Shown in pieces: positions 44,364 through 51,975 of a DNA stretch of 64,000 nucleotides. Within the stretch, counting starts at the first letter, position 1, and the number at the start of each line of letters is the position of its first letter. The notes below the pieces were generated by a model. That model saw only the letters and a program-made list of their open reading frames with translations. It was not told where the DNA came from and ran no database searches. The stretch is from contig CATNEN010000010.1 of assembly GCA_950097015.1 (NCBI GenBank), positions 2,418,001-2,482,000 on the forward strand, written 5' to 3'. The position numbers and the translations under genes were made by a program. Source of the DNA: Macrostomum hystrix. Lineage: Eukaryota > Animalia > Platyhelminthes.

Positions 44364-45886
44364 ATGACTATGCGATTGTCCCCGACAAAGTTGCTGCTGC
44401 TGCTGCTGCTACTGCCAGCGCTACCCTCCGATCAGCTCTCGGTGTCGAAGGAGGACGCTGAGTTCCTCAATCGTCGGCACGCGCGCTTCGCTCGCCTGTT
44501 GAAGTCAGCGGACAATCAGGAGCGGCCACGGTCGCCGGAGCAGCAGTCAGCAGCCGCTGACGCGCTGTGGTCCGAGCTGCTGAACGTCACGAAGGTGGAG
44601 GAGGCAGACTATTACAAGCTGAAATCAGTGGGGTTGAGGGCCAAGGAGCCTCGGCCGCAGTTCGCTCGCAAGCTGGCGACGAAGGATGGGCCCTGCCAGC
44701 GGTTTTGCAACCCGCCGAATCCCTGCCCGCTGGGCCAGACGCCACAATCGACTGGCGGGCGCTGCCAGAACATAACCGCCGCGGACAGCACCGCCGACTA
44801 CAACAAGGCCTACCTGCGGCCCCAGGTGCTGGCGGGCACCTGCATCTGCGACGTGCAGCACAACCCGCTGTTCTGCAACGCTGACACCGCGCGCGAGGAA
44901 GATTCAGGCGATCAGCCAAGACCGTGAGGCACCATGGGACTGCAACTGAGTCTGAGACACTGAGGGGAGAAGGAGACACTGAGGGGAGAAGGAGACACTG
45001 AGGGGAGAAGGAGACACTGAGGGGAGATGGAGACACTGAGGGGAGATGGAGACACTGAGGGGAGAAGGCGACACTGAGGGGAGATGGAGACACTGAGGGG
45101 AGAAGGAGACACTGAGGGGAGAAGGAGACACTGAGGGGAGAAGGCGACACTGAGGGGAGATGGAGACACTGAGGGGAGAAGGAGACACTGAGGGGAGAAG
45201 GAGACACTGAGGGGAGAAGGAGACACTGAGGGTAGATGGACAAACTCAGGGGAGAAGGAGACACTGAGGGGAGATGGACAAACTCAGGGGAGAAGGAGAC
45301 ACTGAGGGGAGAAGGAGACACTGAGGGGAGATGGACAAACTCAGGGGAGAAGGAGACACTGAGGGGAGATGGACAAACTCAGGGGAGAAGGAGACACTGA
45401 GGGTAGATGGACAAACTCAGGGGAGAAGGAGACACTGAGGGGAGATGGACAAACTCAGGGGAGAAGGAGACACTGAGGGGAGATGGAGACACTGAGGGGA
45501 GATGGAGACACTGAGGGGAGAAGGAGACACTGAGGGGAGATGGACAAACTCAGGGGAGAAGGAGACACTGAGGGTAGATGGACAAACTCAGGGGAGAAGG
45601 AGACACTGAGGGGAGATGGACAAACTCAGGGGAGAAGGAGACACTGAGGGGAGATGGACAAACTCAGGGGAGAAGGAGACACTGAGGGGAGATGGACAAA
45701 CTCAGGGGAGAAGGAGACACTGAGGGAGACACTGAGGGGAGAAGGAGAGCAGGAGGAGAAGGAGAGCAGGAGGGAGAAGAGGCAGGCAATGTAACCAGGC
45801 CTTTCAGACGCAGAGGGTATCACAGAAATAAATCAGGGTTAGGGAACACTTTGATGAATCCAGTGATAATGGCAAGAAGAATATAA
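44364..45886 (+). CDS. Neuroendocrine protein 7B2-like PC2 chaperone; exon 44364-44923 plus putative exon 45808-45886
   Basis: Signal peptide, FCNPPNPCPLG motif, C..TADYNKAY..CICDVQH.LFC. The second exon is inferred; without it the CDS ends at 44927. Confidence 0.85.
44950..45750. repeat. 19-bp purine-rich minisatellite with a longer variant
   Basis: GACACTGAGGGGAGAAGGA, later alternating with GACAAACTCAGGGGAGAAGGA. Confidence 0.95.
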
Positions 45887-46506: not shown

Positions 46507-47107
46507 TCACTGAGAAATCGCAGCGTGATAATCTGCGTTTTTCAGCGCAGAACAAAAAGTAGAAACACAAGGTTTGAAAACTGATTTATCGCAAAAATCA
46601 ATTGATCTTTGTACTTTTAGACAAATTTCGCACAGCAACAAATGAGCGCACGGCAGGGTCACGTGACTCCGGGCTCTGCGCCTGCAACTGATGCACCTGT
46701 CTGATGCCTCTTCGAAATCACGCTTCCTGCTGCTGGACAATGAATCTGAAGAAGACACTACCCGTTGCCCGGTCTCTGCTGCTCTGCCATCGGTCTCTGC
46801 TGCTCTGCCATCGGTCTCTGCTGCTCTGCCATCGGTCTCTGCTGCTCTGCCATCGGTCTCTGCTGTGCGGACGCTCCCGACGCATCAAGCAATGCGCTGA
46901 CGCTCAGCGCGGCCTCCACGTCGATCCCGTGACCGCAGTCGGGAAGCAGCCGCTCGCACTCGTGGATCAGCTCGATGAGGTCGCCCGGTCTGCTGGCCAG
47001 ACGGTCTCCCTGAGTCATGAAATGACGACAGGCGCAGAACATCACGCTGCTCCTGTCGAAGCCGTACGACTCGACCAGACCGAGCATCGACTTGCGCTCG
47101 AGCAGGT
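46507..47107 (-). pseudogene. IAP-like copy A, 3' part (UBA-like, 4x MAEQQRP, RING), frameshifted before the RING
   Basis: LLERKSMLGLVESYGFDRSS.., repeat, then stop GNG*. RING CISC..HVTLPCAHLLLCEIC is in another frame. Confidence 0.85.
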
Positions 47108-50100
47108 TGTTGTTGTTGTTGTTGGCGTACGGATCCCTCGCTAGGCATATGGGGGGCGCGCCAGCGCGCCCGTCGCCTCGACGAAGATCCGCACCCGATT
47201 CGGGGCCTCCCACAGGAGGGACATTGAGCCAGCAGAATGGAGGAGTTTGTGGCGTTGATCGGCCCACCTGGGGCATTCAAGCAGGAAGTGCCGCGTGTCC
47301 TCCTCGGGAGCGTTGCAGTGAGGGCAAGACGCAGCGGGTACCTTGCCCCAGCGGTGTAGAGTGGCTTGTAGGAAAGGCGCGCGGTTCGCCCTGAGTTGGA
47401 ACAGCGCCACCTCCGCCGCACGAGGCCAGGCACGGCCGACCTGCAGCCGTTTGCCGCCGCTGAGTCGGTGTGGGTGGTCCAGAGGGACTAGGTCTTTGTA
47501 GGCTCGGTCATCTTCCGCTTGACCTTGCCGCTTGAGAGCAGCTCTGAGTGCCGCGACCGGTGTTGGCATGTTCTCTTGCGGGAGCGAGCAGCCCCCGCGA
47601 GCCAGAATGTCGGCTTCCTCATTGAGCGCCAGCCCGGCGTGGCCCGGTACCCAGATTACAGTGGGCCGGTGGTCCGTGGCGAGCTGCTCCAGCAGAATGG
47701 ACGCCTGTGCAGTTGCGTGGTCTGTCTGGCATTTACGCTGTGACTGGAGCCGGTCGAAGAGCGCTTGGGAGTCGAACAGCAGCCAGACGGACATGCTGGG
47801 GCGTCCGTGGAGATTGGCCAGGGCCACCTCGAGACCAGCTGCGGCCGCAGCGGCCTCCGCGGTCGTTGAGCAGGTTAGGTGCCCCGCTGGGACACTGCCT
47901 CTGATGTCCCGGCTCCCTGGGGCCCGCTGCCGAATCAGGTAGCCGCCTCCTCCATTACGGATGCCTTCCTCTGCTGCGCCGTCGGTCCAGATCTGCAGGT
48001 CTGGTGGGTCTTCCTGCCTCAGGCGGTCTAGCAGCTCCAGGGTTCTTGTCCTCCGAACAACTGGTGCCTCGTCGCGGCTGGTTTCGACACGGACGAACCA
48101 GGTCGGGAGACTGCGGGACCAGGGGCGACGAAAGCAGGTGGGGGGGATACGGCCTTCCACCCGGTCGCGGCCTCCTTCCACAGTGCTCAGTGTCTCGATG
48201 GCCGACTCGCGCCAAGAGCTTCGGGTGCCCGCGGTCCTCGCCTTGAGTCTGGTGCGGGTGGCAGACGGGCTGGCCAGATCGCGAAGTAGATGCCCTTCAG
48301 GGAACTGCTGGCAGCGCAGGAGCAGCTCCGCGGCCCTCTGCCGGCAGATGGTGTTGAACGGCTAGAGGCCGGCGTCGTAGATTAGGGCGCGGGCCCGGGC
48401 TCCGGCGCCGACCCGTGTGATGATCCTAGCAGCGGCATAGTTGGCGGATTCGAGACGTTCGCGGTGGGTGGGGGCCAGGAACGGCCACCAAAGTTCAGCC
48501 CCGTATGGCCCTGCCGGACGAACGTAACTGCAGTAGAGGCGGTGTAGAGTCTCAAAGCTCGCACCCCAGGATCTCGCGGCAACGCAGCGGAGAGCCGCGA
48601 GCCTCCTGTGCAGCGCCGCGAGAGACTTCTTTGCTTGTTCAGCGAAATTGAGCTGCGAGTCGATCGTTACTCCCAGGACCTTGATCTCGCGCATGCAGGA
48701 GACGGTGTGTCCGCCGGCTTGCAGAGTGCCGCCGAACTTGCCGTTGAGCTCAGCCGGGTGGGTACTGATAAGGATGGCTTCAGTCTTCGCCGGCGCCAGC
48801 TTGAAGTGGTGTTCCTCGCACCAGCCGCTCACCGCGTCGATCGCGGCCTGCATCTGCACTGTAGCCGTCACCGGGGAGGCGTCTGATATCTTCACAGTGA
48901 GGTCGTCCGCGTATTGGATGGGCCTACACTTGGGTGCCGCCTGCTGAATGGCCCCGGGCAGGGTCCGAGTGGCGATGTTGAAGAGCAGAGGCGAGAGTGG
49001 ACTGCCTTGCGGTACGCCTTCTTTTAGGACTCGGAGTCGACTGAATTGTGTTCCCCAGCGGACGCAGGCGCGCCGGTCAGCCAGAAACGAGCGAAGCCAC
49101 CGCATCCAGCCGGCCGGTGCTCTGGCCCGAGCGAGCTCACGCAGGACCCCTAGGCGCCAAGTGCGATCGAACGCCGCTTGAAAGTCGAACGCGGCAAGCA
49201 AGGTCCTTGTCATTGGCCGTGTCTGAAGAGAGTCGAATGCTGGTTGAGCCAGCTGGGCCACGGCGTCGAGGGTGCTACGACCCGCTCGGAAGCCTGACTG
49301 CTCATCGGGGATCAGGCCGTTCTCTTCGGCCCAGGCATTCATGCGATTGTTGACCATGGCCTCGAGGGTCTTGCCTACACAGCTCAGCAGAGAGACTGGG
49401 CGGTAGGAGGCTGGGTCGTGGTTCGGCTTGTCTTTCTTAGCGATTGGACAAATGATGGCCGTGCGCCACGCTGAGGGGACTCTCCCCTCTCGCCAGCTCC
49501 TGTTCAACAGAGTCAAAAGCGCCCGCCGGCCTTCGTCTTGTAGTTTCTGCAGAAATGCTGAAGGGGCGGAGCCTGCGGAGCTCCGGAGGACGTCCGCCAG
49601 TTCCGCCATGTGAAATGGGGCCCCGCGTGGGTCTTTGCTGCATGTTCCGAGCGCTCTACGGACCTCGAGTCTGGCTCCTTGTTGGTCTGTTTTCGGGACT
49701 CTGAGCCGGCTGACTGCCACGTAGGTTTTAATCGCCAGGTCCGCTTTTTCCCTGTCCGTGGTTGCTGTCTTTTCGCCCTGCCGTAGCGGCGTGTCCGGGA
49801 GCGGCTGCCGGGCCCTACCATCCAGCGCCCGGATTGTCCGCCACACCTTGGATTCAGGTGCGCGGGTGGATAAGCCGGAGACGAATTGCCGCCTGGCTGC
49901 GGCCTTGGCCTGACTATAGACGCGATCCGCATTCTCGCGAGCAGTGCGGTAAGCCGCCGCTGCGTCCTCATCTCCCTGGGCAGCCCTGGAGTCTGCTAGC
50001 GTCTCACGCGTGGCCCGTTGTGCGGTTCGACAGCTGTCATTCCACCAGCTCTTGGGCTTCTTGACACTCCCTCGCGGGATGCAGCTGGCAGCGGAGAGAA

Positions 50101-50958
50101 GGCGTCTGCAGAACTCGCTGTTGGCGGCCTCTATCGATCCGAAAGCATCGGCCGACCAGTGACGGAGTTGCTCATCGGCCTTTCCGGCGAATAGCGGCCA
50201 GTCCGCACGTTTGAGATTGTACTGGGCGGGTTTGCGGCTGCCTTTCGGTTGCGTGAAGGCCACTGTCAGTAGAATTGGTAGGTGATCTGACCCCATGGTG
50301 TCTTTGACGTCCCAGCTGACATGGCTGGACATCTCTGCGTGACACAGCGAAACGTCCGGGGTCGACTCCTGGGTCCTCCTGGGCTTACACGCGTCGGACT
50401 TCCGTCGTTCAAGGTCGTCCAGCTGTGGTTGGTCATCCAGTCTTCGAGCTCTTCGCCTATTGCGTCTGGGTCTCTTAGCTCGTCCCAACTGCCGTGCGCA
50501 TTCAGATCTCCGAGCAGCAGCCAGTTGCTTTCTGTTGGCCACATGTCGGCATGCAGCCTGCCGTCCCGCTCGTCTCTTGCCGAAGTGCGGACCGGCGGTC
50601 TGTAGACGTTACTGATGTAGAGAGGGCGTTTCTTGTTGCCGAGGAGCCGGATCGTGAGGTGCTCCAGCGCTGCGGTCTCTGGGACTCCCAAGGCCCCCTG
50701 GGCCACTTCGTGGGCAAGCCCGTGCCTGACTAAGGTGAGGAGCCCGCCGTGATGGCCTGCTGCCCCCCTGTGAACGGCACGGTCCCGCCGGTGTGCAGAG
50801 AAGCCTGCTATCTTAGGGGTGTGATCTTGTGCTGTCAGATTTGTTTCCTGAAGGACTGCCACGTCCACTTGAAGCTCCTCTAGAAGATGTTCGAGAGCCG
50901 GGCGCCGCATCCGCAGGCCGTTGAGGTTCCATTGCAGGATGCGGATGTCGGCTTGAGA

Positions 50959-51030
50959 AGGTCCGGGATTTTGCTCAATGTCCCCCGACAGTAGAAGACG
51001 GCAGCGAGACTCGTCGGGGTTGGTCTGCTG
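50959..51030 (-). other. 2A-like ribosomal stop-go peptide at start of LINE ORF
   Basis: QTNPDESRCRLLLSGDIEQNPG-P matches D(V/I)ExNPGP; APE domain starts a few residues later. Confidence 0.9.
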
Positions 51031-51085
51031 CCCACCCGAAAACCCGAAGGTCTGGGTGCGGGCACCGAGGCGGCATCCGGTGGGT

Positions 51086-51151
51086 GGAGGCACTTTGCGC
51101 AGTAAAGCTGCGACATCGGTCCCCTCGGGAAGGGGGCCTCCGTTGACCGAC
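51086..51151 (-). ncRNA. HDV-like (CPEB3-type) self-cleaving ribozyme at the LINE 5' end
   Basis: GUCGGUC AAC GGAGGCC CCC UUCCCGA GGG GACCGAU GU CGCAG CUUUA CUGCG CAAA GUGCCUCC: P1 7 bp with G1-U37 wobble, P3 3 bp, L3, GU linker, P4 5 bp, J4/2 CAAA, P2 with one bulged U. Confidence 0.88.
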
Positions 51152-51502
51152 GCTCAAGCAGGTCGCTCCTCAGCTTGGCGAGAGCGCGCCTCAGCTTCGT
51201 CGAGCTCGTCACGCTCGCTCAGCATGCCGGGAGCCACCTTGAGCAGTCGGAGCAGCTCGCACTGCTCGCCGAGCTGCTCGTGAAGGCGCAGCGGCTCCGC
51301 GTCGTCTGTCGACTCGGCGGTGGCGGCTGAGGTTGCCTGCGGCACCGGAAGCTGGCTGCCGCAGTGGAAGCAGCGGACTGCAGCCGCGCCGTCAGTCAGG
51401 AAGAAGCCCGCGTCCGCCCATCGGCATCGGGCCGCCTCGTCCAGGTGGACCGCCGACCTGAGCGACTGCAAACGGCGCGAGCGCAGCGCGAACTCGGGAC
51501 AC
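51151..51502 (-). pseudogene. IAP-like copy A, 5' part (BIR), truncated at its 5' end
   Basis: Near-identical to copies B-D from CPEFALRSRRL to DLLER. Homology stops at 51502, so acceptor and leader are absent. Confidence 0.88.
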
Positions 51503-51975
51503 GGATGACCTACGTATGCACGCAATGACATTCCGGTGAGCTGGTTTATAGTAGGCTAGGCTAGTGCCTTGAGTGTCGCCCTTAGTAAATTTCACTACAA
51601 GTCTTCAAGCCTTCTCACCGCGGCTGCCCAACATCAAATCTATGTCTATGTGAAAGATCTATGTCAAACGGATGACCTACGTATGCACGCAATGACATTC
51701 CAGTGAGCTGGTTTAGTAGGCTAGGCCATATAAACAACTGTCAGTACTTGACGATGCTAAAAATAGCTAGCGGCAGAATGTACACTCAACTCAGTCAATC
51801 CGACGCACAGAACCCGTGCTCTGCTGGCCTTCAAGACGTATGGAAGGCGTACATCGCCCTTCTTCTGTACTCTGTTTAAAGAATTCTGTATAAAAGGGAG
51901 CTCTGCTCTTGACAGACCCTAACCAGAGCATTCACTGTCCCCCCAGATTCTTCGCGGTTCAGAAACAATCAGAAA

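Follow-up and report, generated by a model that had tools for sequence, protein, structure and literature searches.

A candidate HDV-like ribozyme at the 5′ terminus of an Ingi-like LINE inserted in an IAP gene copy of Macrostomum hystrix

The first 66 nt of the transcript of a LINE in the window (the whole 64,000-nucleotide stretch of Macrostomum hystrix DNA analysed here) very probably form an HDV-like self-cleaving ribozyme with a nested double pseudoknot, for which catalysis and use in vivo are predicted by analogy with known systems. The fold is complete in this copy, its helices covary among related elements, the core bases are conserved and the structure lies at the terminus of the element. 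As a structure the candidate is well supported, and self-cleavage is its predicted activity. The LINE interrupts one of four near-identical IAP copies in the window, and the features of the element and of its host copy are the following:

47108..51151, minus strand: LINE with APE, RT, RNase H and a C-terminal zinc motif (Pfam; limits from three empty-site paralogs)
50266-51093, minus strand: Exo_endo_phos ORF (Pfam)
48362-50542, minus strand: RVT_1 ORF (Pfam)
47141-48181, minus strand: RNase_H and zinc motif ORF (Pfam)
50959..51048, minus strand: extended 2A leader, FGFSGG...LLLSGDIEQNPGP (translation)
47108..47124, minus strand: (CAA)n 3′ tail (sequence)
51152..51163, minus strand: 5′ copy of the target site duplication (TSD), 12 nt with G1 assigned to the element
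47095..47107, minus strand: 3′ copy of the TSD (self-comparison with the paralogs)
51154..51531, minus strand: IAP (BIR) ORF upstream of the insertion in the interrupted copy; shares its frame with the LINE leader and ends in TGA at 51156-51154 (Pfam)

In a tblastn comparison the LINE copy is colinear with a single-ORF relative (P0024), with a frameshift near 50359-50365 and an in-frame stop at 48362-48364, and is lightly decayed. The sequence-only reading had described the ribozyme as active or recently active; 'recently active' fits the ribozyme at most, because the LINE ORF carries the frameshift and the premature stop. The element has a single ORF encoding APE, RT and RNase H (via P0024), an N-terminal 2A and no ORF1, and by this domain architecture it classes as Ingi-like.

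The fold was located on the minus strand, where the RNA from 51151 to 51086 reads GUCGGUC AAC GGAGGCC CCC UUCCCGA GGG GACCGAU GU CGCAG CUUUA CUGCG CAAA GUGCCUCC. Each helix drawn in the sequence-only reading was recovered base for base at its minus-strand position, and the parts of the structure are:

51086..51151, minus strand: HDV-like ribozyme candidate, 66 nt, predicted cut 5′ of G1 (51151) (sequence, window-free model R2, covariation)
51145..51151, minus strand: P1 5′ strand GUCGGUC, 7 bp with 51115-51121, including a G1-U37 wobble
51144-51142, minus strand: J1/2 AAC (sequence)
51135..51141, minus strand: P2 5′ strand GGAGGCC, 7 bp with 51086-51093, 7/7 pairs covarying
51122..51134, minus strand: P3 CCC/GGG around L3, 3 bp (strands 51134-51132 and 51124-51122)
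51131-51125, minus strand: L3 UUCCCGA, 7 nt (sequence)
51115..51121, minus strand: P1 3′ strand GACCGAU (sequence and covariation)
51113..51114, minus strand: GU after P1; G38 pairs with C23 of L3 as the one-pair P1.1
51098..51112, minus strand: P4 hairpin CGCAG-CUUUA-CUGCG, 5 bp (51112-51108 with 51102-51098)
51094..51097, minus strand: J4/2 CAAA, with the putative catalytic C55 at 51097
51086..51093, minus strand: P2 3′ strand G(U)GCCUCC, with the U at 51092 bulged

The window copy shows the hallmarks of the HDV-like class. A 7-bp P1 starts from the predicted cleavage site and is crossed by P2 to give the first pseudoknot; P2 closes the fold, its 3′ strand being placed after P4 and J4/2. The 3′ strand of P3 abuts that of P1 with 0 bases between them in the window and its relatives (nine sequences), and P1.1, a single pair between L3 and the bases 3′ of P1, makes the second pseudoknot. 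The z-score of the nested MFE of the 66-nt region is unremarkable (−1.33), because ordinary folding cannot see a pseudoknot. The flanking bases C(−1) and G(−2) (51152-51153, minus strand) are complementary to G38 and U39 (51113-51114), and an extension of P1 by these two pairs could compete with the single P1.1 pair at this insertion. P1 extensions of such a kind have a moderate effect on cleavage by the R2 ribozyme, and the same has been proposed for L1TcRz clones with G at −1 (PMC3185411).

The position of the fold at the end of the element was defined from the insertion site and from other copies. In the self-comparison of the window, the three IAP paralogs without the insertion join 51151-51163 straight to 47107 and the sequence below it, and the 13-mer ACCTGCT(T/C)GAGCG is duplicated (51151-51163 matches 47095-47107 with one T/C mismatch). 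G1 had been placed at the TSD boundary; this stands, with the refinement that G1 is the last duplicated base, which could be element or target on the evidence of this copy by itself. Run X1, a set of DNA contigs from this organism, contains three 5′ junctions of sibling copies; their match to the window ends at 51151 in two and at 51152 in one, after which the sequence is unrelated, and contigs of the empty IAP site from the same run stop at 51151 from the other side. Since the sibling junctions end at 51151/51152, G1 belongs to the element. Judged from these junctions, independent copies begin at G1, the predicted scission site, and the candidate starts at the 5′ terminus of the family, as the earlier placement at the 5′ end of the LINE had implied.

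One sibling contig is identical to the window over 51095-51151; variant positions in the sibling ribozymes lie near contig ends and were left aside. One 372-nt contig from run X1 matches 51082-51151 only, a 70-nt ribozyme region that is followed by 3′ UTR-like sequence (compare 47134-47151), and is possibly a NARTc-like non-autonomous derivative consisting of the ribozyme plus the 3′ end. A second contig of this run skips 50884-51115.

The LINE is co-oriented with the IAP copy that it interrupts (copy A), as had been noted from the letters; it lies on the same strand as the IAP ORF and the two frames coincide. The TGA that ends the IAP frame sits 3 nt before the insertion and is all that separates the IAP and LINE frames. 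At this codon (51156-51154, minus strand) the paralogs have CGA, that is, T in the LINE-bearing copy versus C in the three empty paralogs, and without the TGA the IAP ORF would read on into the leader and 2A of the LINE with no change of frame. The contigs of runs X5-X7 show the uninterrupted IAP form only, with no LINE-bearing contig. Just downstream of the interrupted copy, staggered self-matches mark a tandem array (44954-45779) with a period of about 38 bp and copies that are 84-92% alike.

Relatives were collected with the RT ORF, which retrieved metagenome proteins of 40-57% identity to the window RT; a second search added more, and their contigs were examined. The same architecture occurs about 120-160 nt upstream of the 2A motif in L001, L002, L034, L035, L036, L037, L038 and L041, with helices of quite different sequence: P1 and P2 are CCCUGCC-GGCAGGG and GAAGAAG-C(U)UUCUUC in L002, GCUGGUC-GACCGGU and AGAGGAC-G(U)UCCUCU in L034, and GCCUGCU-GGCAGGU and UGGGAA-U(U)UCCCA in L041. 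A scan of the metagenome with a 2A-APE alignment gave mostly distant exonuclease-like loci; its only relatives were L005, L006 and L010, the first two without a 5′ end. L004, L010 and L039 were parsed by hand, are not significant with the model and were excluded from the statistics. L004 and L010 have the same helices, with mismatches in P1 and P2 of L004, and with a 6-bp P1, no J1/2 and C for G at L3 position 6 in L010. The region L039:1205-1295 holds a variant of the fold that the model does not detect, with a perfect P1 (CCUCGCC/GGCGAGG), a P2 with the usual bulged U, J4/2 CAAA and a 14-nt L3 containing the mini-hairpin GUC-UUCG-GAC.

The candidate precedes the 2A in the RNase H-bearing group (window, L001, L002, L034 and L037) and in the PHD-bearing group (L035 and L041), in a degraded or variant form in L004, L010 and L039 of the latter. 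In the two PHD-bearing elements looked at, L004 and L035, no RNase H ORF follows the RT ORF. In L041 (1501-2036) the called ORF already starts some 470 nt before the ribozyme and continues in one frame across ribozyme and 2A; this frame may have arisen by fusion of host and LINE, or may be open by chance. On the minus strand of L036, the first ~220 nt from the contig end hold a second LINE 5′ region with a 2A-like GVEPNPGP and a GUUUUUUGG motif, whose ribozyme region is unparsable and may be cut off by the contig end.

Searches with covariance models single out the same site. No match to the 66-nt site was found in Rfam 15, either at the gathering threshold or at E values up to 10, and by sequence the site thus falls outside all curated Rfam families, the HDV, CPEB3 and drz models included. 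Model R2, built from four relatives in other assemblies with the window left out, gave one full-length match in the 64-kb window (50.8 bits, E 1.2e-11), on the minus strand at 51086-51151; no other site there scored below E 3. Model R1, built from the window and four relatives and specifying only P2, P3 and two P4 pairs, recovered four elements outside its training set at the coordinates parsed by hand, namely L036 (E 3e-7), L038 (E 9e-7), L041 (E 4e-6) and L035 (E 0.01).

Pairs were counted in a nine-sequence alignment fitted to P2 and P3 by the model, in which P1 and P1.1 were entered as pseudoknots; MAFFT misaligned the nine sequences and model-based alignments were used in its place. Standard pairs make up 92.7% of the pair cells. 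After column shuffles 64.1% of cells were paired, and none of 500 shuffles was as high as observed, and when partners were slid by 1-3 columns, which keeps the relatedness of the sequences, pairing fell to 39-50%. Compensatory double changes occur in 17 of the 20 pairs. P2 is paired in 95.2% of its cells, with all seven pairs covarying, and P3 in 100%. As P1 and P1.1 are absent from the model, their counts are an independent test: P1 is paired in 88.9% of cells, with double changes in five of its seven pairs, and P1.1 (column 23 with 38) is C-G in six sequences, U-A in two and unpaired in one. The unpaired P1 cells come from L001 and L038, where only the last 3-4 bases of the 5′ strand of P1 are paired and the first 3-4 look like flank; these two copies are probably 5′-truncated. 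RNAalifold independently predicts P3 completely and six of the seven P2 pairs, the pair left out being the closing pair beside the bulge. A lack of covariation among siblings had been named beforehand as evidence against the ribozyme; across the nine related elements covariation is strong in P1, P2, P3, P4 and P1.1.

The bases held constant are those of the core. J4/2 is C-(C/A)-A-A in all eight sequences of alignment A6, and L041 has CAAA shifted by one column, so that the putative catalytic C followed by N-A-A starts J4/2 in 9/9. L3 is 7 nt long and reads U-N-N-(A/C)-C-G-N in all nine, with U at position 1 and G at position 6 invariant; it is UUCACGU in L001, L036, L037 and L041 and UUCCCGA in the window copy. 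In the HDV ribozyme the general acid is the cytosine of J4/2, and a reverse wobble between U and G of L3 binds metal. P4 varies from about 2 to 9 bp among the relatives. The second base of the P2 3′ strand stays unpaired in eight of the nine, the exception being L036, which has no clear bulge there; the unpaired base is U in six elements, G in L037 and C in L035. The sequence-only reading had raised the question of an A opposite the bulged U; none was found in the relatives, which keep the unpaired base. The bulge is thus a family trait, and a recent mutation or lesion is ruled out.

Downstream of the ribozyme, the frame of the 2A is free of stops from +1 to the NPGP (64-80 codons) in all ten elements examined, and in nine of them it has no in-frame AUG. 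The offset of this frame relative to +1 is 0, 1 or 2 depending on the element, and the ribozyme region accordingly encodes unrelated peptides. Conservation of the ribozyme is therefore not a coding constraint; what is conserved is the RNA. The spacing from F to NPGP is the same in the window and L002 by hand count, and the other leaders look similar by eye. A motif G(G/U)(G/U)-UUU-U, encoding (G/V)-F-(S/L/C), lies at 51030-51048 of the window and is also found in L001, L002, L004, L010, L034-L039 and L041, about 24 residues before NPGP (hand count, window and L002 only). In the elements inspected by eye, Phe is encoded by TTT and a further T follows in spite of GC-rich surroundings, and in several the motif reads GGGUUUU, a form of the slippery heptamer of −1 frameshifting.

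A sequence of events can be proposed from the analogy with R2 and L1Tc (PMC6765202, PMC3185411, PMC4035085). The element would be transcribed from upstream host sequence, here the IAP gene, and the ribozyme would fold co-transcriptionally, with C55 of J4/2 (51097) catalysing scission 5′ of G1. This would release a LINE RNA starting exactly at 51151 with a 5′-OH, and would leave the IAP 5′ fragment truncated and tail-less. The precise 5′ end would be copied at the next insertion, which is our proposal for why the sibling copies all begin at G1. With the AUG-less frame open from +1 through the 2A, translation would enter from the host ORF or start without an AUG near the ribozyme, and the 2A would discard the leader.

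Three other readings bear on this proposal. A chance match to a permissive structural descriptor would explain the site only with negligible probability. A loose descriptor does return very many matches, and a fairly strict one still finds about 20 unrelated loci in 392 kb, so that descriptor matches alone were rejected as evidence; chance is refuted by the window-free model, with its single site at E 1.2e-11, and by covariation far above both controls, and the motif recurs at the homologous position upstream of the 2A in nine significant relatives and three parsed by hand. The conserved pseudoknot might also be a 5′ element that does not cleave, bound by the protein that the element encodes or acting as an IRES-like start or a Pr77-like internal promoter. 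Precedents are the binding of R2 protein to a 5′ pseudoknot, the IRES-like role suggested for HDV-like folds and the promoter function of Pr77 (PMC6765202, PMC3383444), and an open leader lacking AUG needs unusual initiation. However, the invariant bases are those of the HDV-like catalytic core (J4/2 C-N-A-A, L3 U1 and G6, and a G-U or Watson-Crick pair at +1), and a DNA promoter would not demand compensatory RNA pairs; a purely non-cleaving role is improbable, and such roles are in any case compatible with cleavage in L1Tc or R2.

A self-cleaving ribozyme in the family could also be accompanied by an inert copy at this locus, the LINE being decayed, the IAP copy maybe a silent pseudogene and the flank prone to misfolding, so that the locus stays uncut. 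The frameshift and in-frame stop of the LINE ORF, the TGA stop of the IAP frame 3 nt upstream of the insertion, the capacity of the −1/−2 bases to extend P1 (an effect described in PMC3185411) and the lack of LINE-bearing transcript contigs among runs X5-X7 are all consistent with this. Against it, the 66 nt match the family model at full length with every helix intact, and a sibling contig is identical over 51095-51151; moreover, a ribozyme needs no protein, and decay of the ORF is thus irrelevant to the cleavage of read-through RNA. We regard inertness of this copy as rather unlikely, and self-cleavage of the LINE transcript at G1 as the preferred reading.

More tentatively, it is quite possible that the ribozyme, the stop-free AUG-less leader and the extended 2A of about 30 residues form one conserved three-part 5′ expression cassette, found in animal LINEs of both kinds, the Ingi-like ones with RNase H and the PHD-bearing ones without it, and shared, perhaps by descent, with trypanosomatid L1Tc/ingi. 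If so, an element with no promoter could use the cassette to exploit a host gene in two ways: at the RNA level the ribozyme would excise the element from the host transcript, and at the protein level the product translated from the host ORF or from an AUG-less start at the ribozyme would be separated by the 2A. The candidate itself takes the combination of HDV-like ribozyme and 2A known from L1Tc beyond the trypanosomatids to a lineage of animal LINEs, in a family that is backed by covariation and invisible to Rfam models. The locus is also a natural experiment: a single IAP copy out of four carries the LINE, which lies in the sense direction and in its frame, and the three empty copies can act as controls. 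It opens to testing whether a LINE ribozyme truncates a host mRNA and how uncapped AUG-less LINE RNA is translated. Both the ribozyme class and its role at LINE 5′ ends being already established, the candidate is a solid addition rather than a surprise.

Elements known to start with an HDV-like ribozyme include R2, RTE, Baggins and L1Tc/ingi (PMC6765202), and L1Tc, like the element described here, combines the ribozyme and its single-pair P1.1 with a 2A and a TSD of about 12 bp (PMC3185411, PMC6765202, PMC3708506). The nearest kin of the present candidate, by structure and context, appear to be L1TcRz of L1Tc/ingi and the CPEB3-type ribozymes. In L1TcRz/Pr77 (PMC3185411, PMC4035085), as in the candidate, the HDV-like fold makes up the start of the element (~70-80 nt), a LINE whose single ORF encodes APE, RT and RNase H behind an N-terminal 2A; P1.1 is one pair and the +1 of the element is the cleavage site, which is predicted here. 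With G1 taken as part of the element, the TSD measures 12 nt, the usual L1Tc value (PMC6765202), and a non-autonomous derivative keeps the ribozyme (NARTc in L1Tc, here one deletion contig). Unlike L1TcRz, the candidate is from an animal and not a trypanosomatid host, has G at +1 (in a G-U wobble) in place of the C1 of the mapped trypanosomatid ribozymes, and carries a family-specific P2 bulge; its likeness to Pr77 is one of architecture and context only.

The CPEB3 ribozyme shares with the candidate its compactness (66 nt here) and the one-pair P1.1. It has GU after P1. Its L3, UUCACGU, is identical in L001, L036, L037 and L041, whereas the window has UUCCCGA. In the mouse Cpeb3 ribozyme TTCACGT lies at the same distance from the cleavage site, as judged from a primer 18 nt from the site (PMC10919898). 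The differences are the lack of an Rfam CPEB3 match at E 10, the location at a LINE 5′ end rather than in an intron of a conserved gene, and the P2 bulge.

With the ribozymes of R2, RTE and Baggins (PMC6765202; PMC3774820) the candidate would share the processing of the element 5′ end from a host co-transcript. Those elements have no promoter of their own, and an IRES-like role has been proposed for the fold. The elements belong to other LINE clades, R2 having a REL endonuclease and a fixed rDNA target; R2 ribozymes are larger (about 184 nt), and a 2A peptide is not reported for R2, RTE or Baggins. The N-terminal 2A of a single-ORF APE-type LINE is, by contrast, shared with the 2A-bearing metazoan LINEs (Ingi-1_AC of Aplysia, CR1/Crack; PMC3708506), and a PHD finger between 2A and APE, as in the CR1/Crack elements with 2A then PHD (PMC3708506), is found in L004, L010, L035, L039 and L041. 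The survey of those metazoan elements (PMC3708506) has 0 mentions of a ribozyme, whereas here an HDV-like ribozyme candidate precedes the 2A in both the RNase H-bearing and the PHD-bearing groups.
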